Source of the DNA: Macrostomum hystrix
Lineage: Eukaryota > Animalia > Platyhelminthes
Reading direction: 5' to 3'
Length of the DNA stretch: 64,000 nt
NCBI GenBank assembly: GCA_950097015.1
Contig: CATNEN010000001.1
Coordinates: 24,800,001 to 24,864,000, forward strand
Shown here: one piece after another, positions 3,201 to 20,304 of the stretch
How the letters are laid out: each line of letters opens with the position of its first letter
How positions within the stretch are numbered: position 1 is the first letter of the stretch
Program-made: the position numbers and the translations under genes
The notes under the pieces: generated by a model
What the model saw: the letters and a program-made list of their open reading frames with translations, nothing else
Told to the model about the DNA's origin: nothing
The model's database searches: none

Positions 3201-6200
3201 CTGCCAACTAACATCATCCGCTCCGCTAGGGTGTTTGTGTTTGAACCCCCAGCCGGTCTGAAGTCCTCCCTGATAAGAACCCTCTCTGCCATTCCACCGC
3301 AGCGCATGACCAAGGCTCCTGCCGAGCGAAGCCGGCTCTACTTCCTCCTGGCCTGGTTCCATGCCGTTGTCCAGGTGAGCTATCCCGTTGTCATGCCAGC
3401 TATTATCCAATTGATCGGTCCGCTGTTGTCCCATTGATCTCTCAGCTGTTATCTAATTGATCTGTTAGCTGTTATCCCCGTTGATCTGTCAGCTGTTATC
3501 CCCGTTGATCTGTCAGCTGTTATCCCCGTTGATCTGTAAGCTGTTATCCCCGTTGATCTGTCAGCTATTATCCCATTGATCTGTTAGCTGTTATCCCCGT
3601 TGATCTGTCAGCTGTTATCCCCGTTGATCTGTCAGCTGTATTCCCCGTTAATCTCTCAGCTATTACCCTTAGTCTGTCGACTCTAATCCTATTCTATTCG
3701 TCTTAATCTCGCCCACAGGAGCGGCTGCGCTACACGCCGCTGGGCTGGGCCAAGCGTTACGAGTTCAACGAATCCGATTTAAAGTGCGCCTGCGACACCA
3801 TCGACACCTGGGTGGACGGCGCCGCAATGGGTCGCGCCAACCTGCCCCCGGACAAGATCCCGTGGGACGCCCTGCGCACCCTCATGTCCCAGTGCATCTA
3901 CGGCGGCAAGATTGACAACAGCTTCGATGCCCGACTGCTTCAGAGCTTCCTGGAGTCGCTGTTTGACACTGCCAGCTTCGAGGGCGACCGGCCCATTGTG
4001 GTGCACGCCGATGGTGTGGAAGGCGGCCGCATTATGCCGCCTGAGGGCTCGAGCCGCAATGAGATATTCGCTTGGATCAACAAACTACCGGACACCCAGA
4101 CCCCGTCCTGGCTGGGCCTGCCCAACAATGCCGAGAAGGTGTTGCTGAGGAATCTCGGTAAGCTGGCTCCGGTCTAGTATATGCCAGCATGCGCTGCACC
4201 GTATTGCATGGCCTTCTTTTGAAAACGATATTTTTTGTTTACACAGCATCTGCTTGCAAAAAGTACGACTTCTAATTCTATTTTGGAACTATAAATGCTG
4301 CCAGTCAGCTCCTAGGCTGCCCTGTGTTTGAGCACACTGACCACCCATCATGGCCGCTCTGAGGCGTTCCCTAGCTGTGGTAGAAAATGGCCTTCAAGTT
4401 GCGGCTGGCTCTCTTCTATGCTGCTGGTGGCCGCCAAACCACAATGAGCCCAGCAGAATGCTTAGAGAGTTATAGCTTTTACTGTTATTTTTAACCGTTG
4501 TCTCAAGTTGCGTTTTGAAGTCAGTGAGATTGTAGCTTTTGGAACTACGTATAGAGCCATAGTCAGCTCCTAGGCAGCCCTGTGTGAGCTCACTGCTCAC
4601 CCACCATGACTGCTCTGAGGCGTTCCCTAGCTGTGGCAGAGCACAGGCTCTCTACTAAGCTATGCTGCAGGCTGCTCTCACCTCACAGTGAGCCCTGCAG
4701 TACGCAAAGATTGCCACAGATTTTCAGAATTATTTGAGTAGATAATTTGTGTAATTAAGCCACAGTCAGCTCCCAGGCAGCTTTGAGCACACTGCTCAGC
4801 TATTGGCCGCTCTGAGGCGTTCCCTAGCTGCGGCAGAAAATGGCCTTCAAGTTGCGGCCGGCTTTCTTCTATGCTGCTGATGGCTGCCAAACCAGTCAGC
4901 CCGGCAGTACGCTTAGAGAGTTATAGCTTTTGCTGCTTTTTGCGTATTGAATCTTAAAGTTTGTCTTGAATTGCTCTTTTAAGTTAGATTTTGTTGATAT
5001 TAGGACTATGATTACAGCCACAGTCAGCTCCTAGGCAGCCCTGTTTGAGCACACTGCTCACCTACCATGACTGCTCTGAGGCGTTCCCTAGCTGTGGCAG
5101 AGCACAGGCTCTCTACTAAGCTATGCTGCAGGCCGCTCTCATCTCACAGTGAGCCCTGCAGTACGCAAGGATTGCCACACGTCGCTGCGATCGTACAGTA
5201 TTTCATTTCTCATTTATCCGCACTTCAATTATTTATTGTCTTTTTTAAACAGCCGCTTGCCTAATAAAGGACCTGCTCAAGCTTGAGTTGTTGGAGGAAG
5301 ACGAGAAGGACCAAGGCGGTAGTGTTCACGTTAACTGTCACATTGCGGCTTACTCAATCACAATGCCTTTCATTTTCGGTGCAGGAGTGCTAAGTTCATT
5401 ATTTATTTACTACTCAAGGGTGACATTTTTCAAATGTATTCGCTTTAGTCAGCAGTCTCGATAAAGGTGCAACTGTTAAAAAAATAGAAAAGCCACTTAT
5501 GATGGTGTCTGTTGTCCTTACACATTGTAATCTATTTAATGGGACATTTTTACCTTAGGTTAAATTAAATTATTTGAGACTCTCATATACAGGATATTTA
5601 ATTTGCTTACAATTCGGTGCTTTGTTATTCTGCTTTCATTGGGTTTTGTGTACTAATAAAGACGCTTGTACTCTAGGTTAATTTACTCGTCATCTGATTG
5701 TCGGTCGACCATATCATTGTAACTACTACTCCAATCAGTAGTTGTAATGCTCATGCCTATAATTCCATTGCATTCACCGTTAATAACTAAACATATTTAT
5801 AGTTACCCTTTTACTGTACTCTACAGGGCTTTCATGCCCATAGGATGCTACTAATATACTACTATTCCCCACACCCACCAGGCCAAGAGATGCTGACCAA
5901 GGTGATGCAGATGCAGCACGTGGAAGATGACGAAGATCTAGTTGTTAGCGGTCGCAAGCGCACCATCAGCAACGCCGGCGACGCCCGGCCAGCCTGGATG
6001 CGCCAGCTGTGCGCCTCGGCGAACGACTGGCTGGGCCAACTGCCCAAAGAGCTGCGCCGCATGGCCCGCACAGCCGAGAGCATCAAGGATCCGCTGTTCC
6101 GCTGCTTCGAGCGAGAAGTCACCTCTGCCGCCAATCTGCTGGCCATTGTTCGCAAGGACCTGACCGAGGTAGCCGCAGTCTGCGCTGCTGAGCGCAAGCC

Positions 6201-6825
6201 CACCAATCACCATCGCAAGATGATGGCCGACCTGCAAAAGAGTCTCATTCCCATTGGCTGGAAGAAGTACACAGTGCCGGCTGGCCTGACCGTCATCCAA
6301 TGGGTGGCGGACTTTGCCGAGCGAGTGCGCCAGATGGCCCGGGTGTCGGCTATGGTGGCCCAGGGCGGCATCGAGTCGCTGAGGTCCGCTCCCGTCTGGC
6401 TGGGCGGCCTGTTCATGCCGGAGGCCTACATCACCGCCACCAGGCAGACGGTGGCCCAGTCTAACAGGTGGGCCCTGGAGGAGCTCACCCTGGACGTCAA
6501 GATCCGGCCAGCTGGCGATGGTCCGCCTCCGGACGCCAGCACCTTCGTTGTCCACGGCCTGCGGCTGATGGGCGCCGAGTGCGTTGATAACAAGCTGCGC
6601 CTGGTGAACACCATCAGCAGCGAGCTGGCCCGCACCGAGATCTGCTGGGTGCGGCACGAGGCCTACAAGAAGCCGCCGGCTGAGAGCTCCGTCAGCCTGC
6701 CAGTCTACCTGAACCCCACCCGGGCTCAGCTGCTCTTCACCCTTACCTTCCACACTGAGGAGGCCAACACTGCCACGCAGTTCTTCGAGCGAGGCGTGGC
6801 TGTCACGGCCTCCGTGCTGGGCTGA
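266..6825 (+). CDS. DYNC1H1: Cytoplasmic dynein 1 heavy chain, 3' part (AAA5, strut, AAA6, C-terminal domain); gene begins upstream of the window
   Basis: Exons 266-613, 1013-1378, 1776-2039, 2136-2528, 2856-3374, 3719-4157, 5882-6825 have GT-AG boundaries and join in frame. Diagnostic peptides: [67 protein letters not shown]. Confidence 0.96.
670..935. repeat. 24-bp intronic minisatellite (gagtaggcagtttagtgggataat)n
   Basis: About 11 tandem units in the dynein intron 614-1012. Explains the spurious MSRQFSGI ORFs. Confidence 0.9.
1427..1690 (+). mobile_element. tRNA-derived SINE (intronic)
   Basis: A-box-like tagcctaatgcttag, B-box-like ggttctattccc, a central 'agcaagatacttaact' core-like motif and an AT-rich tail. 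The body recurs at about 20305-20510 (+), 9680-9766 (-), 2610-2715 (-) and 12880-13000 (+). Confidence 0.65.
2610..2715 (-). mobile_element. Partial tRNA-derived SINE
   Basis: The minus strand reads ggtcgtgggttcgaatc (B box) followed by ccttaagcaagacactt, the same core motif as in the 1427 copy. Confidence 0.5.
3420..3670. repeat. 24-bp intronic minisatellite (ttgatctgtcagctgttatccccg)n
   Basis: About 10 tandem units in dynein intron 3375-3718. Confidence 0.9.
4297..5182 (+). ncRNA. Cluster 1: four box H/ACA snoRNA-like units in the last dynein intron
   Basis: Units ~4297-4477, 4556-4721, 4759-4928, 5017-5182. H boxes: AGAAAA 4382, AGAGCA 4638, AGAAAA 4835, AGAGCA 5099. 3' boxes: AUA 4472, ACA 4716, AUA 4923, ACA 5177. 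Guides cagct/cgttcccta and (g)ctat/acgc(tt) are complementary to 28S rRNA. Confidence 0.85.
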
Positions 6826-7865
6826 GCTAGTTCGGGCTGGTGTCTTGGCTGGAAATTTTCTGTCTGACAAATTATGTTAATTTAACGGTTTTGACTAGTG
6901 CGTGAAACTAACAGCTTTATTCTCTCTATCTTGCTTTATATCGCTTTATTGCCCGTAGTTATTATTAATATATGAATATTCTATCGCTTCTTTGTCGCTG
7001 ATTTTAGTGAGATTAGCTAGAGATTTAACTTAACTTTATCTGGAATTGAAAGAAAATATAATCCTAAGATAAATCTTAAATTTATCTTAATCCCATTGTC
7101 ACATGGCAATAGGTACTCGGCAAAAATAGTTCTAGTGATCATCTTTTAGGCACACAAGAAGCAATTCTGCAATGCTATATACAAGTATCATTGTTATTGT
7201 TACTATTATTTTTATTATTCACATCTCTATTACTCAAGCCTATTCTTCCTTGAGCTACTTTCAAACTTAATTAAAAGTTCGGTAGATCAGTGTCTCACCT
7301 TTGCTTTTCGTAGTTAGCACGCTTTTGAGGTTCTCAGTGTTTTTTGTTTCTTCTTCAAAGCAGTAAATCTCTATTTCACCATTTTCTAGTGTGATTCTAT
7401 ATATTCTGTTCACTGATTCTTGGATATGTCTATCAAATTGGAATTGACTATAATTGGAAATATCAATATTTATTTTACTAACCAGTTTATTCAGCTTTCC
7501 TCTGGACTTGGACTTCAATTGAAGCTTTTGTTATATCTATTAGCTAAATTAAACTGCATAACTCACAGTTCTAACAAAATATATTCGATCTACAATCTGT
7601 TATTAGGCTAGGTTTTCAGCGTCATACAAAATCACTGTCATAAAGCTTTCTCACTTATTTACTGTAAAAATCTGTCCCATTTAGCAAATGACTTCTTATT
7701 TATAGTTATTAGGATGCTCCTGTTGTCAAGGCTTCAGTCTCATTTCAATCGGTAATCACCCGCACCAGGTAATCTCAGCAAATGTTACCCTGAAAAATAT
7801 TCTATTCTTATCTCATTCCCAAAGCATTGATCCACTCTAATTATTAGTTACAATATATACTATCA

Positions 7866-8230
7866 GCCACAGTCAGCTCCTAGGCAGCCCTGTGTTTGAG
7901 CACACTGCTCACCCACCATGACTGCTCTGAGGCGTTCCCTAGCTGTGGCAGAGCACAGGCTCTCTACTAAGCTATGCTGCAGGCCGCTCTCATCTCACAG
8001 TGAGCCCTGCAGTACGCAAAGATTGCCACATATTGTCAGAATTATTTGAGTAGATAATTTGTGTAATTAAGCCACAGTCAGCTCCCAGGCAGCTTTGAGC
8101 ACACTGCTCAACTATTGGCCGCTCTGAGGCGTTCCCTAGCTGTGGCAGAGCACAGGCTCTCTACTAAGCTATGCTGCAGGCCGCTCTCATCTCACAGTGA
8201 GCCCTGCAGTACGCAAAGTGAGCTACAGTA
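7866..8230 (+). ncRNA. Cluster 2: two box H/ACA snoRNA-like units just upstream of the MRGBP splice acceptor
   Basis: Units 7866-8033 (H 7950, ACA 8028) and 8071-8230 (H 8147, ACA 8225), with the same guide pockets. Confidence 0.85.
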
Positions 8231-8305
8231 GCTTTTACCATAGTCTCTATTTTAGTTGCAAATCTCTTATAAATTAATCGAACTTCCCGCTTGGCGCTTG
8301 CAGTC

Positions 8306-8938
8306 ATGACCAAAGGCAGCAGCTCTGCCACAGCGATGGGGTCGGCCGCTGACGGTCAGAAGCGACACCAGGCGGAGCCGTTGCCAGCTTGGCCCATCGA
8401 GCACGAGATGAACCTGTTCTCTGCGATGCGCGGCCACAAGCCTGTGGGCGTTGATCGGCACTTCCAGATGCTCTACATCTCCGAGAAGCTCAATGCAGCC
8501 CAGCGAGAGCGCGGCCTCCATCCCATCCCAATCAGGGAGATCTGGACCCTGCTGGACGGCCTGTACTCCATGCCGGCGCTGCACGACTCCGAGGTGCTGC
8601 CGTTTCCTAATCGGGAAGTTGAATTCTGCCTTCCAGCCGATTCGCCAGATTGGAAGCCGGTGCTCGCAATGGACTTTCCCCGCGTGCAGTCGGCTGCCGC
8701 TGCTGTCACCGCCCCTGGCAACGTTGCCGCCGCGGTGGCCAATTCCCCCGGACTGGCTGGCGAGGCGGCGACTGCGACTAGGAAACGCGGCCGGCCACCG
8801 CGCGGCACAGCTTCGCCGCAGGCGACGCCGTCCAGCCGCAGTCATTCGCCAGCGCCTAGTAGCGAGGCCGGCGACTCGGTGGCTGGCAGCGGCGGGGGCA
8901 GCCTCTATAAGAAGCCAAAGAGAGGGGCTTTGATCTAG
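8306..8938 (+). CDS. MRGBP: MRG/MORF4L-binding protein (Eaf7-like NuA4/TIP60 subunit) with an AT-hook-like KRGRP motif
   Basis: W-x-x-E-H-E-M-N-LFSAMRGHKPVGVDRHFQM...IWTLLDGLYSMPALHDSEVLPFPNREVEFCLP matches the Eaf7/MRGBP family. ATG at 8306 follows an acceptor-like ttgcag (8298-8303). Confidence 0.88.
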   Translation: MTKGSSSATAMGSAADGQKRHQAEPLPAWPIEHEMNLFSAMRGHKPVGVDRHFQMLYISEKLNAAQRERGLHPIPIREIWTLLDGLYSMPALHDSEVLPFPNREVEFCLPADSPDWKPVLAMDFPRVQSAAAAVTAPGNVAAAVANSPGLAGEAATATRKRGRPPRGTASPQATPSSRSHSPAPSSEAGDSVAGSGGGSLYKKPKRGALI

Positions 8939-9833
8939 CGCGATTTACTCTCTTAAATTCTCTAGTTAGGCATCATAAATCCAAGTAATGCAAATATTTC
9001 GGATTACTACTCACAAAAGTAGTATGTATGTATATCACTCACGCGTCTGTGTCTTGGTTTCCCGGTAGATTGAGTAAGTATCAAGTAATTGTCATTTGTC
9101 AATATAAACAACCATTTCCTCATCTCATGTCTTTGCGTTTGAATTTCCTTATTCATCAAACGTGTACATAATTTAACGAATGTAGTAAAAAGTGTAATCA
9201 TTGAGTGTAATTTTCTCGTATTATGCATTTCTATTTTCCCTATTTGACTCGTTTATCAGACGAATAAAATAATTATAACGAAGTTACGAACCGTTTTTTT
9301 ATGTAATGTTTAATGGTAACGTCTATGTGTTTTTATTATTTATTTTGTAAATCAGTTTAGGTATATCCTACAGTGCATGGGCTAAACAGCTGTTTAGTGT
9401 ACACAGCCAGGCACAATAGCCTTGCGGGCCCAACTGAATTTAGTGAAAGCAACTTCATTTAAGCTATTTCGTGTGCCAAATAAACTAAAAGTGCAATGAA
9501 ACTGCTTAAATTACAGCTTGTCCATCAAGTAGTATAACAAGAATGTTGCCAGATTAATTCGCTTACATTAGCCTCGAGTGGCTGCTTAAATATTCATTTA
9601 ATGCTTTGATCGCCGCTCAAGGTACGCATAGTGAAACAGAAAAGCAACTATAGACTAGAGAAACGCCACATGTACCATGAATTACCCCAGCTAGTTGCAG
9701 ACTTGAGTGACTCAGTAAAGCACCTTTAAGTCGTAAGTACGTCGCTCTGAGCACTAGGCTACATCAGGTTGTACTCAACTTAGAGTCTTAATAGTTCCTC
9801 TTACTTGACCCGCAGCTCCTGTCCGGCCCGAGA

Positions 9834-12800
9834 ATGTCCGCCCGCACCCGCCTGCCGCAGTATCTGGTTCCGGCCAGGCAGAGGGCGCTCAAACCGCAGT
9901 TTATGCGCAATCAACAGCTGGCCTCGCTTGAGTCTATGCTCAATAGGACTGTGCTCACAGTGCAGCGGGCTACTCATAAGGATATTCTGGGTAAGTGTCA
10001 AGACAAACTGTTTATAACTTTAAACTTATTGGCTACATATCTGTAAAATAAAAAGCATGTAGCTTCGAAATGTTCGATTTATGCGTTTGCCTTTTTTTAA
10101 CATTCTTTAAATAGTCCGCTCTGAGTAACAAGTCTTATGTTTTAAGGCCACATTCAGCTCCTAGGCAGCCCTGTCTTTGAGCGCACTGCTCATTCACAAA
10201 TATGGCCGCTCTGAGGCGTTCCCTAGCTGTGGCAGAGCACAGGCTCTCTACAAAGCTATGCTGCAGGCCGCTCTCACCTCACAGTGAGCCCTGCAGTACG
10301 CAAAGATTGCCACAGATTGTCAGAATTATTTGAGTAGATAATTTGTGTAATTAAGCCACAGTCAGCTCCCAGGCAGCTTTGAGCACACTGCTCAGCTATT
10401 GGCCGCTCTGAGGCGTTCCCTAGCTGTGGCAGAAAATGGCCTTCAAGTTTCGGCCGGCTCTCTTCTATGCTGCTGATGGCTGCCAAACCAGTCAGCCCGG
10501 CAGTACGCTTAGAGAGTTATAGCTTTTGCTTGTTTAAGGGGTTTAATTAATATTATAAATCTAAAAAACGTCTCAAATTTTCCCGAGGCTTTTTCAAGCC
10601 TTTCAGTAGATTCAGTAGATTAATTTCTTGGACTGCGAATGCAGCGCCACAGTCAGCTCCTAGGCAGCCCTGTGTTTGAGCACACTGCTCTTTCACAAAT
10701 ATGGCCGCTTTGAGGCGTTCCCTAGCTGTGGCAGAGCACAGGCTCTCTTCTATGCTGATTGGCTGCTGATTTGACAGTGCGCCCTTCAGTACGCTTAGAG
10801 AACTGCATTAGCATAAAGCCTGGTGCATATGAGCAACTGTTCTCATTGTCCATTTTCGGACATATACTCTATACTGTCTATACTCTTGTATCGAGCATCA
10901 GATCTGAACTTTTGCAGAATTCGGTGACCGCTACGTGTCATCTGATGACTCGCTGCCAGCAGCCATTGAACCCGCGCCAGGCTCCGGTGTCGACATCGAC
11001 GGTCTGCTGCAGCAGGCTCAGGCCAAGTTTGATCGCGATCTGCGCACTGCACGCGACACTCTCAGGCGAGAATTGGAGGCCGACAAGGAGAGAGCGCTGG
11101 CCGAACAGAAGGAGGAGTTCGAGCGGCACCTGGATCAGGTGAGCTGGCTTGCTCATATTGATATGTATGCATTTGATATTGTTAGCAAGGCCACAGTCAG
11201 CTCCTAGGCAGCCCTGTCTTTGAGCGCACTGCTCATTCACAAATATGGCCGCTCTGAGGCGTTCCCTAGCTGTGGCAGAGCACAGGCACTCTAGTAAGCT
11301 ATGCTGCAGGCCGCTCTCATCTCACAGTGAGCCCTGCAGTACGCAAAGATTGCCACAGATTGTCAGAATTATTTGTGTAGATGATTTGTGTAATTAAGCC
11401 ACAGTCAGCTCCTAGGCAGCCCTGTGTGAGCACACTGCTCATCCACCATGACTGCTCTGAGGCGTTCCCTAGCTGTGGCAGAGCACAGGCTCTCTACTAA
11501 GCTATGCTGCAGACCGCTCTCATCTCACAGTGAGCCCTGCAGTACGCAAAGATTGCCACAAATCGGTCTTAACTCATTTGTGTAGATAATTTGTGTAGCT
11601 AACGCTCACGGCGCGTCACTTGTGCTCATCTGTGCAGAGTCACGCAGAAGACATTGTGATCCCCAAGCGCGCAGGCAATTTGTTCGGCTAGGACAAAAGC
11701 ACGCAGTTTACAATTAGGCGAGACGTATTATCTCTTAAAATTTTCCTAAACAGTCACATTGCTTTACATTATTTACATCAAGGTTCAATTACTTGAATTG
11801 AATATTCAACAATAGAATATTCCATTGTTAGTCAGTTGTAAGAAATGATAGCTACATGTATACCACCGTTTGGGGTGACCTCACCTCCTTGAAGCTCATT
11901 GACGCCATCCATGCTTCGAAATTTTTTCGGAGCATCGAGAAGGGCCTCATAAGTGACTTTGTTCTCCTCAGGCAGTAGCTTAATGATTCTGAGGCACGTA
12001 TTCGTCCATCCTGTTGTGCCGTTAAAGAAGTTTTCTGCGTAAATCGGTAGCCTCTTGTACCAATACAGGCTCGAGTGTCTTTTTTCACCCTTGACTGGCT
12101 CCATTCTTTGTCTATACAGATTGGCGCCATCATATAAGAGTATTAGAGCGTCGGACTTTTCAAATACGAGCTCGTACAAACCCAGCTTGCCAGACTCATG
12201 CATCTAGATCAGAATGCGCTCTTGTACCAGACTCGAGCATCTAGAATGCGCTCTTGTACCAGACTCGAGCATCTAGAATGCGCTCTTGTACCAGACTCGA
12301 GCATCTAGAATGCGCTCTTGTACCAGACTCGTGCATCTAGAATGCGCTTTTGTACCAGTCTCGTGCATCTAGAATGCGCTCTTGTACCAGACTCGTGCAG
12401 CTAGAATGCGCTCTTGTACCAGACTCGTGCATCTAGAATGCGCTTTTGTACCAGACTCGTGCATCTAGAATGCGCTCTTGTACCAGACTCGTGCAGCTAG
12501 AATGCGCTCTTGTACCAGACTCGTGCATCTAGAATGCGCTTTTGTACCAGTCTCGTGCATCTAGAATGCGCTCTTGTACCAGACTCGTGCAGCTAGAATG
12601 CGCTCTTGTACCAGACTCGTGCATCTAGAATGCGCTTTTGTACCAGTCTCGTGCATCTAGAATGCGCTCTTGTACCAGACTCGTGCAGCTAGAATGCGCT
12701 CTTGTACCAGACTCGTGCATCTAGAATGCGCTTTTGTACCAGTCTCGTGCATCTAGAATGCGCTCTTGTACCAGACTCATGCATCTAGAATGCGCTTTTG

Positions 12801-14737
12801 TACCAGACTCATGCAACTAGAATCTTGTATCATTTAGAGCTGCTTAAAATGCATCTGATTTTTTGTGTCCTTACTACGCAAGAGGCTAAATTCCCACCTT
12901 GTTTCAGCAGTGAATTGGGTACTCAGCATTAACTAGGGTGGAAACTTAAGTGTAAAAGCCCAACAGTTCACGGACTGAATGTGTACGCAGCCTTTCTAAT
13001 ACAATTTGCCAGGTGTGCGCTCTGCGCGACAAAGCCGAGGACATGGCCAAGCGAGACCTGCGCCGAGCCTGCGAGCTGGACAAACAGGCGGCCCTGCGGC
13101 AGCAGCGGGACTCCATGGACACTCAGCGCCGAGAGGAGATCGAGCGGGCCCGGGCTGATGAGCGCCAGCTAGCCAGGCAGGCCTCGGCTGCCGACCGGGC
13201 CGAAGCTGTTCAGCGGGCGCTTAAAGAGGCGGAGGTAAATTACTGAGCTGGCAGCTCTGATTTAACGACACTCAACATGATTGATCGATGTGTCAATTCT
13301 CTGTTTCTTTCTTCTTCAGTCCTTCATTTCCCCCTACTCGTGCTTTCAATGACTGAAATCTCATACCTGTTCCCCCTGTTTCAAATTTGCAACGCTTCAG
13401 GTGGCATTTGAGCGTCGCGAGCAGCAGACGATTGAAAAGACTCGTCACGACTGTCGTCGGCAATTCAACGAAGAGCTGGCTGGCATAAGAAAACGTCATA
13501 GAGAAGAGGTGGACTCTTGGATGACTAAGTGAGGCCTGATGCAAATTAGAGCGAATCTACTCACGACATTCTAATCTACGTACAATAATACTTATTTCGT
13601 AATGAGCCACAGTCAGCTCCTAGGCAGCCCTGTGTGAGCACACTGCTCACCTACCATGACTGCTCTGAGGCGTTCCCTAGCTGTGGCAGAGCACAGGCTC
13701 TCTACTAAGCTATGCTGCAGGCCGCTCTCATCTCACAGTGAGCCCTCCAGTACGCAAAAATTGCCACATATTGTCAGAATTCATTTGTGTAGATAATTTG
13801 TGTAATTAAGCCACAGTCAGCTCCCAGGCAGCTTTGAGCACACTGCTCAGCTATTGGCCGCTCTGAGGCGTTCCCTAGCTGTGGCAGAAAATGGCCTTCA
13901 AGTTTCGGCCGGCTCTCTTCTATGCTGCTGATGGCTGCCAAACCAGTCAGCCCGGCAGTACGCTTAGAGAGTTATAGCTTTTGCTGCTTTTTTGTTTATA
14001 TAAATCTCAAACGATGTCCTTGATTGCGCTTTGAAGGCAGTCAGAGTGCAGATTTAAGGTATACAAATACAGCCACAGTCAGCTCCTAGGCAGCCCTGTG
14101 TTTGAGCATACTGCTCATTCACAAATATGGCCGCTCTGAGGCGTTCCCTAGCTGTGGCAGAGCACAGGCTCTCTACTAAGCTATGCTGCAGGATGCTCTC
14201 ATCTCACAGTGAGCCCTGCAGTACGCAAAGATTGCCACAACACTTTATTACAGGCTTTTATCAATTATTAACGACAATTGCCCATGTACTCATAGCTGCT
14301 CTGTTTCCTACCGCACTGGCAGGTACAAAGACCTGTACAAGAACTTCGAGCGCCTATTGGACAGCAGTCGCGGTGTTGAAGGTGATTTCCAAAGTCTTCA
14401 GACTGACTACCGCCGCTTCCTGGATTATTCTGACGGCCACTTTCACTCGGACTACATGATGAAGCTGAAACAGGCCTGCCTCGACGCGGCCTCCGATGTT
14501 GGCCGGGCGCTGGCCTCCCCAGCTGTTGTGACTGTGCCCGAATTGTCGAAACAGTCGGTCAGGACTGCTGCTACTACTGTGAGTAGTGCCATAGTGCCGA
14601 ATAGGCAGCGGGTGGCTCTAGTTCAACAGCAGAGGCGCAAATTGCGACCGTCCAACTCACCGGTTAGCGCCAGAGTCAGCTCAGCTCAACCGCTCACCAA
14701 ACACGCGGAAGTTTATACTGATGAAGATGTGTTCTGA
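9834..14737 (+). CDS. Coiled-coil protein, C6orf163-like (5 exons)
   Basis: Exons 9834-9990, 10918-11138, 13013-13234, 13401-13528, 14323-14737 join in frame with GT-AG. N-terminal THKDILEFG motif, E/R/Q-rich coiled coil, C-terminal LQTDYRRFLDYSDGHFHSDYMM. The family call is from recalled motif similarity. Confidence 0.75.
10147..10810 (+). ncRNA. Cluster 3: three box H/ACA snoRNA-like units in intron 1 of the coiled-coil gene
   Basis: Units 10147-10317 (H 10234, ACA 10312), 10355-10524 (H 10431, AUA 10519) and 10646-~10810 (H 10733; 3' box degenerate, GCA). Confidence 0.82.
11190..11563 (+). ncRNA. Cluster 4: two box H/ACA snoRNA-like units in intron 2
   Basis: Units 11190-11360 (H 11277, ACA 11355) and 11398-11563 (H 11480, ACA 11558). 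Confidence 0.85.
12190..12825. repeat. 32-bp minisatellite (ctagaatgcgctcttgtaccagactcgtgcat)n
   Basis: About 19-20 tandem units in intron 2 of the coiled-coil gene. Confidence 0.92.
13606..14242 (+). ncRNA. Cluster 5: three box H/ACA snoRNA-like units in intron 4
   Basis: Units 13606-13771 (H 13688, ACA 13766), 13810-13979 (H 13886, AUA 13974) and 14072-14242 (H 14159, ACA 14237). Confidence 0.85.
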
Positions 14738-15930: not shown

Positions 15931-17226
15931 GATGTTTTGTGATTCTGGTAGTTTTTTATCAGGTAGATCAGAAAATTTTAGTCCGTTTTTTGGATTTTCA
16001 TAACGATTGGTTGAATATTTTGGAAGAAATAGAAAAATTAAATCTTTAATTAATTGATAATTGGAATATCAGTTCAATTCTTTTTACTGTTGAATGTCAA
16101 GGTATTAATTCTGCAAATACAAATTTGTAAGTAGCCCAAGTTCGGAATATGTGTGCAAGTTGCCTACGCACTGTACAAAACGACGGGTAATAAGAAAAGG
16201 GACAGAAATAACGTTTTCGTCCTGTTGGTCAGATGTACATATGCAGCCAGTGGCCCAGCTGAAGCCATTCGTGTGTGCAAACTGAGTGTGCAAACTGGCG
16301 TCACATATTAAGAACATTTACGTTCCTAACATGGCCTCTCAAAAATAAAATTGAGAGGCAGAAGCAGATGCCGTAAATAGAAGCCTGCAGACAAACACTA
16401 GCTTGGAGTCTTACAGCTGAGGCTGAACCATTCTGCTAATCGTGCAGCTGCTGTTTTGATTTGAATTCAGAATTGGCTGAAGAGCTTTCTCTGAACTTAA
16501 TTAATCGATCTGACCAGTTCTGTCTTCATTCAATTCATTCGATACTGTTTTGAAGGTAAGTGGAATGAAAAATGAGCATGCATACACATATATTAATAAA
16601 ATAATGCTAATGCTGCTTGTCTAGTGTTTATGTACTTGTATTTTTTTTGTTTCTGTATGACAGGATTAAAAAAATGTAACAGCTGAAAAAAATTATTATG
16701 CATGCATACAATTTTCCATTAATTGCTCTTATAATTTACGAAGGGGATACTGTTTGCTAGTCTAATATACTAATTTTGTGTTTTGAACAGTCATAAAAAC
16801 TTCTACAAATAAAAAAATGACTTGTACAATTATTTATAATCCGATACAAATGACACCTAATCCAGACAAAGGCATAGCAGCAGCTCTTGCGTAGAGCTTC
16901 CGAGGACCTGTGTACATTTTTTTTCAGTCCGTGGACTGCGGGCGCCGCAACACCCACCCAAATTTCTACCTTAGCTAATTCTAGCATCCACTTTTATAGC
17001 TGAGTGAACTGATCGAAGCACCGGGCAATTAATTGTCAAACTTAAAGGACACAAAGTGCCTCCCTTGGGATGAGATTTGGTTGTGACTCGGTTGTGACTA
17101 CTTGGCTCTTGAAATTTCTCTAAAACAAAATTCTCACTATCTTCGATCTTGCTCGACCGAAAATTCTGCTCGATAATATGCTTAAATACCACCCTACCCT
17201 GCTTTTTGCTTCCAGCTGTGAATTCG

Positions 17227-18630
17227 ATGGGAAATTCACAAGTGACCAGAAGCCCCGGAACGCAAGGCAAGCGCAGGCGTTTGGCCCTGTTGCATGCGGC
17301 AGAGCGGGGCGACTTGGCCAAGACTCAGCTGAAGCTGGAAAAAATCTCTGCTAATCTGGTTGACGAGGCCTGCCAGGAGGCGGCAATAACTGCCAGTGTC
17401 ATGGGCCACTGGGATGTGGCCGGATTTCTCATCGAGTCGATAGATGCAAGTGAGACTAGGAGCCAGAGCTACAAAGACCTGGCCATTTCAGCGGCCAGAT
17501 GGGCTAATTTTGACTTTTTCGAATACTTTGTGACCCGCTTAGACCAGGCGGAGGAGCAGAGATGTCGTATGAGGGCTGTCGAGTCGGCAATCAGGCGGCG
17601 TCGAGTCGATGATGTAAAGTTTCTATTGAATGGCATTGCAAGCGGGCCCGAGAAGGACAGCTGGTGCATGGACACCTTGGACAGCATCGCCTGCTCGAGC
17701 CACTGGCGCTTGGCATCGCCGCTTCTACTCGGTGCCATCAGCGATCAGGCTGCGAAAAACCAGTGGTGCAGCAGTGCCGCTCGAGTCGCGGTTGAGTGCA
17801 ACAGACTGGAGCAGGTGTCGCTCTATGTGAAGTTCATATCGGATGCGGCCATGCGTTGCCAATGGCTGCGCGATGCCGTCTGCTCAGTGGTGAGGCGAGG
17901 CCTAGCAGAAACAGGGATGTTTTTGCTGACCATGTGCCCCAGCGACGCTGACGGGGATCTTTGCCGAGTTGATGCTGCGGAGACCGCGGCCACCTACGGG
18001 AATCTTGAAACTGTGAAACTGTTCATGCGCTCCATCACCGACAGTCGAATTCGACAAGACTGCGAGCTCCGAGTCGTGGCCCAAGCGGCTCTGGCCGGCA
18101 GGGATAATGTGGTCGAGGCGATAGGCATAAAGCCCGAATGGCTGCTCTCTGATGTCGCAGTGCTGAGCTTTGTAGCCAAGCGGGCCATCAACAATGAAAA
18201 CGCCATCCTGAGCGACGCGCTAAACCGCATGCAACCAGCCGCGCTGCCGCGGCTGCTGTCACTCTCCGTGTCCAGCGGACATGTCGCGCTGGCGCTGACA
18301 CTGATACCTCGCATCGATAGGCAGCATGTCGATCTGCCTGATGGCGCGGGCACCACTGCGCTCATGCTGGCAGCTGATGCAGGGCATCACGGACTGATTA
18401 CCAAACTGCTCGAGCTCGGTGCCTCAGTCATCGCTAAAGACAATCGCGGTCGGACAGCGCTGACTAGGGCCTGCGAAGCCGGTCACGTGCGAGCAGTCAA
18501 GAGTCTGCTGGACGGGGGTGCAGATGTCAGTCATCGTGACGGCCGGGGCCTGTCTTGCTCGGATCTGGCACAGAAACTCGGACATTGTGAGGTGCTGCAT
18601 CTACTGCTGCCTGTGGAGAATCGTCAGTGA
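17227..18630 (+). CDS. Ankyrin-repeat protein (single coding exon)
   Basis: ATG at 17227 after an acceptor-like ttttgcttccag. Canonical C-terminal ankyrin repeats (GTTALMLAADAGHHGLITKLLELGA, GRTALTRACEAGHVRAVKSLLDGGAD) follow about 8 degenerate ~35-aa helical repeats. Confidence 0.85.
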   Translation: MGNSQVTRSPGTQGKRRRLALLHAAERGDLAKTQLKLEKISANLVDEACQEAAITASVMGHWDVAGFLIESIDASETRSQSYKDLAISAARWANFDFFEYFVTRLDQAEEQRCRMRAVESAIRRRRVDDVKFLLNGIASGPEKDSWCMDTLDSIACSSHWRLASPLLLGAISDQAAKNQWCSSAARVAVECNRLEQVSLYVKFISDAAMRCQWLRDAVCSVVRRGLAETGMFLLTMCPSDADGDLCRVDAAETAATYGNLETVKLFMRSITDSRIRQDCELRVVAQAALAGRDNVVEAIGIKPEWLLSDVAVLSFVAKRAINNENAILSDALNRMQPAALPRLLSLSVSSGHVALALTLIPRIDRQHVDLPDGAGTTALMLAADAGHHGLITKLLELGASVIAKDNRGRTALTRACEAGHVRAVKSLLDGGADVSHRDGRGLSCSDLAQKLGHCEVLHLLLPVENRQ

Positions 18631-19449: not shown

Positions 19450-20050
19450 ACAACAACAAACTGCAGCAACCCTGGCTGAGGCCAAAGAGTGGGAAGCTGT
19501 CAAAAAGCGCGCGCGAGCGCAGAACTGCGCAGGAGGATCAGTCCGCGAGGGTCGGAGATGCCGGCATCAGTCAGCAGCAGGTCGACGAAACGTTGTGTCC
19601 TCGCCTGGCCGCGCCGCCGTGGTCCCTGCAGGGAAAGCAGCAGCACATCTTGCAGGGGCTCTGGGCAGCGCTGCTCCGCACGGATAACGTGGCCGGCCAC
19701 CTGCAAGCGCCGGGTGCGGAGTAGCTGGCTTGGCCGGCAGAGCTGGGCCCGGTGGTACAGCTCGTCGTTGCTGATGTTGGTCGTGGAGTTCGGCGAGTAG
19801 TGGACTCCGAAGGCAGCGCGCAGAAGTGCAGCGTGCGCGGCGTCCAGCTGCCGCTCCTGTGAGCTGGTCAGGGTCCACGTGTGGGCGTTGTACAGGAGCG
19901 CAGTTTCGATGACGGCTTGGTACAGACGCCCCCTCAGCCGGTCTGGCAGCGCGGGACACTGCAGTACAGTTCGCAGGGAGCGAAACGCCCCCCAGGCGAG
20001 CGCCCTGCGCCGAGCGAAATTAGGGCCGGCGAAGCCAAATGGTTTTGGGA
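19450..20050 (-). mobile_element. 5'-truncated non-LTR retrotransposon (RTE-like RT C-terminus) with target-site duplication
   Basis: RRRALAWGAF...LYQAVIETALLYNAHTWTLT...ISNDELY, then stop, short 3' UTR and (TTG)n tail. Direct repeat aacgcataacaaca at 19436-19449 and 20051-20064. Confidence 0.85.
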
Positions 20051-20304
20051 AACGCATAACAACAGTCTATAAAAACATTTTTAGAGGCCACTTTTAAACA
20101 GACGCGTGCGCGTAGAATTTCTGGCTGTCAAGATACTTTTCCTTCGCTGGCACCTTCTAAATTAAATCTTATTTATCACACAGCACAGTTAATTAGCTGC
20201 TTGCACTCTGTGGTTCCAGGTAATTACTGGGTTTAGGCTAGCCTGTAGGCCTTAAAAATATGAGTCAGTAAAAATACTGTTAGGACTATGTTAATACGTT
20301 TTAT

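Follow-up and report, generated by a model that had tools for sequence, protein, structure and literature searches.

Fourteen sense-strand units of 161–183 nt, lying between positions 4297 and 14242 of a stretch of the Macrostomum hystrix genome, are likely paralogous genes for one box H/ACA snoRNA of the SNORA63 type, carrying two predicted guides for 28S rRNA. The window, meaning the whole stretch of DNA analysed, comprises 64,000 nt of contig CATNEN010000001.1 (GCA_950097015.1), and all coordinates are positions within it on the forward strand. The units form five clusters, with 4, 2, 3, 2 and 3 members respectively. An exact 13-mer, CGTTCCCTAGCTG, occurs 14 times, always on the + strand, against a chance expectation of 1.2; this count and the delimitation of the units bear out the first-pass annotation, which had described a dual-hairpin repeat in 14 copies and five clusters, all sense to the genes.

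Unit 1: 4297–4479, + strand; type B (AGAAAA, AUA); lowest covariance-model score, 89.5 bits
Unit 2: 4555–4721, + strand; type A (AGAGCA, ACA)
Unit 3: 4758–4928, + strand; type B (AGAAAA, additional mini-hairpin, AUA)
Unit 4: 5016–5182, + strand; type A; ACA lies 73 nt from the dynein 3' splice site (5252)
Unit 5: 7865–8033, + strand; type A; top covariance-model score, 118 bits
Unit 6: 8070–8230, + strand; type A; lower-stem 3' strand in a third version (AGTGAGCT); ACA lies 75 nt from the trans-splice acceptor
Unit 7: 10146–10317, + strand; type A
Unit 8: 10354–10524, + strand; type B; identical in sequence to unit 13
Unit 9: 10645–10810, + strand; chimera of AGAGCA and a type-B pocket; GCA replaces ACA
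Unit 10: 11189–11360, + strand; type A; begins 50 nt past the intron donor
Unit 11: 11397–11563, + strand; type A
Unit 12: 13605–13771, + strand; type A
Unit 13: 13809–13979, + strand; type B
Unit 14: 14071–14242, + strand; type A; inside the intron beginning at 13235

Box H/ACA architecture

All 14 units share the layout hairpin, H box, hairpin, ACA/AUA, with the boxes in a fixed register. The H box (ANANNA) sits directly 3' of the lower stem of hairpin 1 and reads AGAGCA in 10 units and AGAAAA in four; the 3' box, always directly 3' of the lower stem of hairpin 2, is ACA in 9/14, AUA in 4/14 and GCA in one. Type B units carry, in addition to the AUA box, an extra mini-hairpin past the H box. 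Two units deviate: unit 1 is damaged, with a shortened lower stem in hairpin 1 and AUGC replacing ACGC in pocket 2, and is probably degenerate, and unit 9 is doubtful as a stable RNA because GCA replaces ACA.

Folded alone, each domain forms a lower stem, an internal loop and an upper stem, with Z-scores between −1.6 and −1.8 (5' domains) and between −2.7 and −3.0 (3' domains); the canonical fold with the pockets forced open lies 6–10 kcal/mol above the minimum free energy. Pairing in hairpin 1 holds in 93% of cells, compared with 25–45% when the partners are slid, and we found no compensatory changes among the paralogues, since these are too similar to one another. In hairpin 2 the structure persists despite sequence change—a single 5' strand of its lower stem pairs with four different 3' strands (6–8 of 8 bp), and two pairs of its upper stem are altered on both sides—and the type A lower stem contains two central mismatches. 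With this hairpin-hinge-hairpin-tail fold, the H box and the complementarity described below, the units resemble box H/ACA guide RNAs, as first annotated; protein binding, processing and the modifications themselves we infer.

Guide pockets and their predicted 28S targets

The strands of pocket 1, TCAGCT and CGTTCCCTAG, do not vary in any of the 14 units (pi = 0), in agreement with the annotation. They pair around U3278 of the 28S rRNA of the same genome, with 9+6 bp (15 bp) where 9+5 had been proposed, and this uridine is the top match for the pocket among 1374 rRNA uridines, at a level reached by 0 of 2000 shuffles. Its distance from the H box, counted from the pocket top, is 17 nt, slightly long relative to the usual ~15 nt between guide pocket and box (PMC6049503). 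On this pairing, with 28S UAGGGAACG-U-G-AGCUGG, the 5' pocket would direct dyskerin/Cbf5 to convert U3278.

Pocket 2 pairs around U3177 with 4+5 or 6+4 bp (9 or 10 bp), its top being at a constant 14 nt from the 3' box in 14/14 units. That spacing and those pairings stand as first described; the complementarity taken alone is at chance level, being reached in 455 of 2000 shuffles (23%). Both variants of the pocket have U3177 as their top match among the 1374 uridines, and the bases specific to each variant (G in type A, UU in type B) add pairs to that site. The 9–10 bp exceed the experimental minimum for guide complementarity of 8 bp (PMC6049503), and both pockets have the form expected of a bipartite guide, with at least 8 bp around an unpaired U-N at ~15 nt from the box. 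The 3' pocket pairs with AAGCGU-U-C-AUAGC and probably directs modification of U3177.

It is also conceivable, though we think it rather unlikely, that only the 5' pocket works, on U3278, and that the 3' hairpin serves snoRNP assembly or another role, its match to U3177 being fortuitous. A pairing of 9–10 bp that 455 of 2000 shuffles attain would fit such a single guide, as would the yeast position homologous to U3177 (2843), which we take to be m3U rather than pseudouridine. In yeast, half of the H/ACA snoRNAs have a single target site, and snR37 lacks a pocket in its 3' hairpin (PMC13015370). Against a fortuitous match, the single uridine out of 1374 picked by both pocket variants is one also targeted by SNORA63, the type-specific bases of A and B units each extend the pairing there, and the 14-nt spacing is exact in every unit. 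We prefer the dual-guide reading.

Both target sequences are present in the rDNA of this genome within the LSU_rRNA_eukarya match, 101 nt apart, as was found when the pockets were paired to the species' own 28S in the manner the annotation had suggested. U3278 is homologous to E. coli 2575, yeast 2944 and human 4491, and U3177 to E. coli 2474, yeast 2843 and human 4390; the distance between the two human positions is likewise 101 nt. This mapping confirms the site identities given in the annotation, and the equivalence of the yeast and human sites (2944/2843 and 4491/4390) is given in PMC13015370. A literature search found no mapping of the two pseudouridines in any flatworm.

Copy history and relation to known snoRNAs

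Searches of the 220-Mb genome by BLAST, covariance model and guide pattern recovered only the 14 local copies; other pattern matches occurred at control frequency, and no copy was found outside the 10-kb stretch. Nucleotide diversity (pi) rises from 0 across the 16 guide nucleotides through 0.02–0.06 for stems and 0.29 for the apical part to 0.52 for spacers, and the 36–40-nt linker between A and B units is conserved (pi 0.06). Between cassettes, identity is 93–100% within units and falls to 20–50% just past their borders. Guides and stems are thus conserved far better than loops and spacers, and the units are selectively kept. The array probably arose when an A-linker-B(-X) cassette was duplicated locally; selection, gene conversion or both have since maintained the near-identity of its units against a background of decaying spacers.

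These data bear on whether the units are instead a snoRNA-derived repeat that no longer makes functional RNA, either decaying duplicates or a mobile retroposed element, which we regard as very improbable. The high copy number, the scatter of copies across three genes, the apparently damaged units 1 and 9 and the lack of an Rfam family match could all be read in this way. A repeat of this kind is nonetheless hard to reconcile with 220 Mb devoid of any other copy, with copies confined to one strand within 10 kb, with the absence of visible poly(A) tails, and with guides that are invariant beside adjoining spacers diverged to 20–50% identity; moreover, no guide other than these units was detectable for a conserved site. 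The platypus snoRTEs, retroposed snoRNAs dispersed by retroposition, resemble the units in being snoRNA-derived and present in many copies; they are dispersed, whereas the flatworm units occupy one 10-kb locus, on one strand, in tandem cassettes. We reject the mobile-repeat reading put forward in the first-pass annotation because no copy lies outside the 10-kb stretch, and the random orientation and loop-like mutation of guides that it named as signs against a functional array were not seen—the copies are local and sense, with a guide pi of 0.

The annotation had further supposed that the flatworm RNA combines guides carried on separate RNAs in human. This did not hold: in Deryusheva et al. 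2019, 28S-4390 and 28S-4491 are both assigned to SNORA63 (PMC6984369), and the flatworm RNA therefore looks SNORA63-type. As vertebrate SNORA63 (E3) is reported to guide the same pair of sites, we regard the flatworm RNA as functionally equivalent to it and possibly orthologous. SNORA63 (E3, RF00092; PMC6984369) shares with the units the two-hairpin box H/ACA form, an intronic origin and the homologous site pair, the guiding by the flatworm RNA being predicted. The two differ in that the units show no detectable similarity to the Rfam model in sequence or structure, lie in different hosts, number 14 copies in five clusters and, in type B, add the mini-hairpin past the H box and the AUA box. 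Yeast snR37 and human SNORA10 have only the first target site, the homologue of U3278, in common with the units; snR37 is 386 nt long, with extra branches binding Upa1-Upa2 and Rbp95 and a 3' hairpin without a pocket (PMC13015370), and SNORA10 combines that site with 18S-210 (PMC6984369).

The Rfam search that the annotation had called for, with SNORA10, snR37 and SNORA63 in view, matched no family on the units. At gathering thresholds nothing was found on them across the whole window; at E≤10, over the 10.6-kb region and two single units, no H/ACA family, SNORA63 included, matched their + strand; and the SNORA63 model RF00092 (gathering score 90 bits) had no match in the whole genome. As none of the 4227 Rfam families scored on the units, SNORA10 and snR37 cannot have done so. 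Weak minus-strand matches, to an S15 leader and to S. pombe snR36 (5185–5301), were attributed to chance. Homology searches have also failed for schistosome snoRNAs (PMC2770079), and the absent RF00092 match therefore says little about function.

What we describe is thus a known RNA in a flatworm version with many copies, and not a new guide combination. Since neither the RNA class nor its targets nor the multi-copy intronic layout is new, the finding is more useful than surprising. If confirmed, it would mean that one dual-guide H/ACA RNA for human 4390 and 4491 in the peptidyl-transferase centre is common to flatworms and vertebrates, which would support the SNORA63 reassignment by Deryusheva et al. 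and suggest that this dual guide is old within Bilateria. Annotating snoRNAs of flatworms by homology is difficult (PMC2770079), and the Macrostomum model gains a concrete, testable H/ACA gene family, a clean example of near-identical units between decayed spacers and a candidate for snoRNA release out of trans-splicing by-products.

Host genes and proposed routes of release

The clusters lie along three same-strand genes, for which intron joints and spliced-leader acceptors were taken from assembled RNA contigs.

4158–5252, + strand: dynein heavy-chain intron holding cluster 1; GT..AG, with splice sites and reading frame from the sequence
8302–8303, + strand: AG trans-splice acceptor of the MRGBP/Eaf7 gene; RNA contig with 23 nt of the Macrostomum spliced leader
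9814–9815, + strand: AG trans-splice acceptor of the third gene (ATG 9834); RNA contig with the identical 23-nt leader
9990–10916, + strand: intron 1 of the third gene, holding cluster 3; GT..AG, joint 9989->10917 in two runs
11139–13012, + strand: intron 2 of the third gene, holding cluster 4 and a 32-nt tandem array; a contig's loose end behind 11141 continues at exon 13013

The exons flanking the first intron match Pfam AAA_lid_11 and Dynein_C; the host is a cytoplasmic dynein heavy chain. The MRGBP/Eaf7 gene (ATG 8306, stop 8938, AATAAA 9263) encodes an Eaf7 domain and matches a Branchiostoma MRGBP-like protein at 51% identity, and a protein search with MRGBP matched only distant animals, no Macrostomum relative among them. 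The third gene, an uncharacterised coiled-coil gene, gave no Pfam match on three exons searched one by one and no usable protein-atlas match; neither search bore out its first-pass label, C6orf163-like. Its cluster 5 intron begins at 13235; the AG at 14252–14253 named earlier as the acceptor does not fit the reading frame as we read it, and the in-frame candidates, 14342 and 14351, are both weak.

RNA contigs carrying the spliced leader (sequence in PMC8629364) at the second and third genes place cluster 2 upstream of a trans-splice acceptor, which amends the earlier picture of four intronic clusters and one before a splice acceptor: the units are sense in introns as described, and the cluster 2 acceptor is trans, not cis. 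The hosts had also been called unrelated. Yet the second and third genes are trans-spliced and lie 690–730 and 532 nt behind their upstream neighbours, within the published Macrostomum spacing for a spliced-leader operon, and the three hosts may therefore form one polycistronic unit.

Multi-isoform snoRNA clusters with more than one snoRNA per intron occur in Drosophila and plants, in introns of one or neighbouring genes. The flatworm array is alike in its several near-identical intronic isoforms of one guide and differs in having one cluster upstream of a spliced-leader acceptor and not in a cis-spliced intron; a literature search for the Drosophila isoform names found nothing. Four introns, and one spacer ahead of a trans-splice acceptor, carry the units in sense orientation. 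Excised introns, or the upstream piece that is discarded, would be the source of the RNAs, freed by cleavage between neighbouring units and by exonucleolytic trimming as far as the bound proteins. We tentatively entertain that cluster 2 yields two functional snoRNAs from the outron or intercistronic dynein-MRGBP RNA discarded by trans-splicing, and that one dynein-MRGBP-third-gene transcript feeds all 14 genes. If true, the making of snoRNAs would be coupled to trans-splicing and to the resolution of the operon; our literature search found no report of such a route.

Independently transcribed snoRNA clusters are known from plants, yeast and trypanosomes, and the flatworm clusters might likewise have promoters of their own and merely overlap the host genes. 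The 2–4 units per cluster would need endonucleolytic separation, as in such clusters, and the conserved A-B linker (pi 0.06) could be a processing signal. Every unit is sense-oriented, however, four clusters lie within verified or well-supported introns, and in clusters 1 and 2 the final unit lies 73 and 75 nt, respectively, before a splice acceptor; we accordingly hold separate promoters to be improbable and favour release from host transcripts. The same 36–40-nt linker raises the possibility that A-linker-B is a single four-hairpin RNA. Low-depth RNA contigs lie on units, with none on unit-free parts of the same introns.

Anatomy and uniformity of the units

The window contains 14 exact occurrences of the 13-mer CGTTCCCTAGCTG, all of them on the plus strand, where chance would give 1.2. 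Repeat finding and alignment agree with this count, placing units of 161-183 nt in five clusters of 4, 2, 3, 2 and 3 at 4297-14242, and the description given in the first-pass annotation (14 copies, five clusters, their hairpins and boxes) is accurate. In every unit, the lower stem of hairpin 1 reads GCCACAG/CTGTGGC and the strands of its guide pocket (pocket 1) are TCAGCT and CGTTCCCTAG; the tip of the upper stem is variable. An H box (AGAGCA or AGAAAA) follows, then a second hairpin and a 3' box, which is ACA in 9 of the 14 units, AUA in four and GCA in one. The 3' domain comes in three kinds:

Kinds of 3' domain
Type A: AGAGCA with ACA
Type B: AGAAAA with AUA, plus an additional mini-hairpin
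Unit 9: chimera whose box is GCA

In unit 1 the lower stem is shortened and AUGC replaces ACGC, so that this unit may be a decaying copy.

Folded alone, each domain yields a lower stem, an internal loop and an upper stem, with Z-scores of -1.6 to -1.8 (5' domains) and -2.7 to -3.0 (3' domains); when the pockets are forced open the fold stays canonical and lies 6-10 kcal/mol above the minimum free energy. For hairpin 1, 93% of cells are paired, compared with 25-45% when partners are slid, and no compensatory change was found across the unit alignment. Hairpin 2 is the more telling structural evidence: the 5' strand of its lower stem, GGCTCTCT, faces four different 3' strands (AGATTGCC, AGAGAGTT, AGTGAGCT and AGAGAACT) and forms 6-8 of 8 possible pairs with them, the box after it keeps a constant register, and two upper-stem pairs are altered in both partners (in unit 9, C-G has become A-U; in type B, A-U has become U-G).

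A snoRNA-derived mobile repeat had initially been offered as an alternative reading of these copies. Across the genome (220 Mb, 42 contigs), three separate searches (unit BLAST, a 5'-domain covariance model, a guide-pair pattern) all recovered only the 14 local copies, with the remaining pattern matches at control frequency, and a dispersed mobile repeat is rejected on these grounds. Divergence among the units is graded by element:

Mean pairwise difference among units
16 guide nucleotides: 0
Stems: 0.02-0.06
Hairpin 1 tip: 0.29
Homologous inter-unit spacers: 0.52

When the three A-B-X cassettes are aligned, identity is 93-100% within units and 20-50% immediately outside them. Units 8 and 13 are identical despite decayed flanks, which points to gene conversion in addition to selection. 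The AT-rich linker of 36-40 nt between A and B units is nearly as conserved as the stems (pi 0.06, versus 0.52 for other spacers); it may serve in processing as a signal, belong to a four-hairpin RNA, or have been carried along by gene conversion.

A-B linkers between the paired units of each A-B dimer, and a remnant
4719-4757: linker
8031-8069: linker
10315-10353: linker
11358-11396: linker
13769-13808: linker
~11575-11600: linker remnant after unit 11

Guide pockets, predicted rRNA targets and SNORA63

Both proposed target sequences are present exactly in the rDNA repeats of this genome (~11.6-11.7 kb), 101 nt apart in a region that matches LSU_rRNA_eukarya in full. The H/ACA pairing rule was then applied to each of the 1374 uridines in this genome's 28S, 5.8S and 18S rRNA, with 2000 shuffles as control. 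Pocket 1 had a clear best match at U3278 (9+6 bp, including one G-U), reached in none of the 2000 shuffles. Both versions of pocket 2, in hairpin 2, matched best at U3177 (4+5 bp in type A, 6+4 bp in type B), with a score that 455 of 2000 shuffles reached somewhere. The two sites put forward in the first-pass annotation are both there, each as the best match of its pocket. Alignment to the annotated E. coli 23S rRNA equates U3177 with E. coli 2474 and U3278 with E. coli 2575, and hence with yeast 2843 and 2944 under the usual offset of +369 from E. coli numbering. The yeast 2944 site is human U4521, old number 4491 (PMC13015370). Experimentally, guide-substrate pairing requires a minimum of 8 bp and the pocket lies ~15 nt from the box (PMC6049503); pocket 2, at 14 nt, agrees with both values, and pocket 1, at 17 nt, is slightly long.

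Both target sequences recur at 16.05 Mb and 23.27 Mb on C1 of the genome assembly (G000), the chromosome-sized contig to which the window belongs, where they may mark rDNA units, or pieces of them, lying apart from the main arrays:

G000:C1:16047924-16058934: both target sequences, with a spliced-leader copy nearby
G000:C1:23265666-23265779: both target sequences

The combination of guides had been thought novel, on the understanding that in human they reside on separate RNAs. However, Deryusheva, Talross and Gall (PMC6984369) give the vertebrate box H/ACA snoRNA SNORA63 (E3) as the guide for 28S-4390 and also for 28S-4491, the latter via a pocket once regarded as orphan and 'highly conserved evolutionarily', so that one vertebrate RNA is reported with the same two guides as are predicted for the flatworm units. 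This likeness rescues the pocket 2 assignment despite its unremarkable score, and the chance that the best match of a random pocket would fall on U3177, one uridine in 1374, is small. It is very likely that the units are true genes for H/ACA RNAs guiding a conserved A-site uridine, and they probably guide the second site as well.

No Rfam family, among them those proposed at first pass, matched the units, whether the cutoff was the gathering threshold or E<=10, and the SNORA63 model found nothing in the whole 220-Mb genome. In schistosomes, homology searches likewise missed nearly all snoRNAs (PMC2770079). For both reasons we file the units as putative box H/ACA snoRNAs of SNORA63 type by function, a filing that covers function and not common descent. 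In our reading they correspond in the flatworm to vertebrate SNORA63, locally amplified and kept uniform.

Host genes and trans-splicing

Pfam searches of individual exons, one at a time, identified dynein heavy-chain exons flanking cluster 1, as well as an Eaf7/MRGBP domain (8291-8935) in a gene whose best named relative is amphioxus MRGBP-like (51% identity). Assembled contigs of public runs, taken as RNA because they covered exons only, contain a GT..AG joint from 9989 to 10917, which defines an intron with cluster 3, and a loose end behind 11141 that resumes at 13013, which defines an intron with cluster 4. Low-depth RNA contigs lie on units and none on unit-free intron parts, a weak sign of unit RNA accumulation. 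Two tandem repeats neighbor the units:

3500-3692: 23-24-nt tandem repeat (CCCCGTTGATCTGTCAGCTGTTAT), dynein intron, just upstream of the units
12115-12946: 32-nt unit repeated ~26 times in tandem, sharing the intron with cluster 4

Identical 23 extra letters precede 8303 and 9815 in the RNA contigs and correspond to the 3' portion of the spliced leader of Macrostomum lignano, which is 35 nt long (sequence from PMC8629364); the leader thus identifies the source of this DNA as a Macrostomum. Of the 29 exact copies of the leader in the genome, most recur at the rDNA period on contigs C15, C17 and C42. Besides 18S, 5.8S and 28S, each rDNA repeat (~11.6-11.7 kb) holds two further genes in its spacer, located as follows in L027 (G000:C15:12000-21999):

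L027:9376-9399, minus strand: spliced-leader RNA gene
L027:9713-9875, minus strand: U1 snRNA gene (152 bits)

Cluster 2 had been placed just before a splice acceptor; an acceptor does adjoin it, but the leader on the RNA contig at 8303 marks this as the MRGBP trans-splice acceptor, and the cluster lies outside any cis-spliced intron. Its last unit ends 75 nt before the acceptor, and that of cluster 1 ends 73 nt before its own. Release of snoRNAs from the trans-splicing by-product is a possible feature of the locus.

Downstream of the dynein stop codon at 6825, the region 7075-7619 is transcribed in 4/4 runs at depth below that of the coding exons, and probably represents a long 3' UTR that ends beyond the ATTAAA at 7548; contigs stop nearby, placing the dynein 3' end at ~7570-7620. 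MRGBP ends at ~9283 (AATAAA at 9263). The gaps to the next acceptor, 690-730 nt from dynein to MRGBP and 532 nt from MRGBP to the uncharacterised third gene, both fall below the 1-kb operon criterion for M. lignano (PMC8629364), and it is therefore plausible from these distances that one polycistronic transcript would host all 14 units. Two other frames were noted by eye:

17149-18630, plus strand: 493-aa open reading frame with ankyrin-like repeats at its end
19500-20057, minus strand: 185-aa frame resembling a retroelement polymerase fragment
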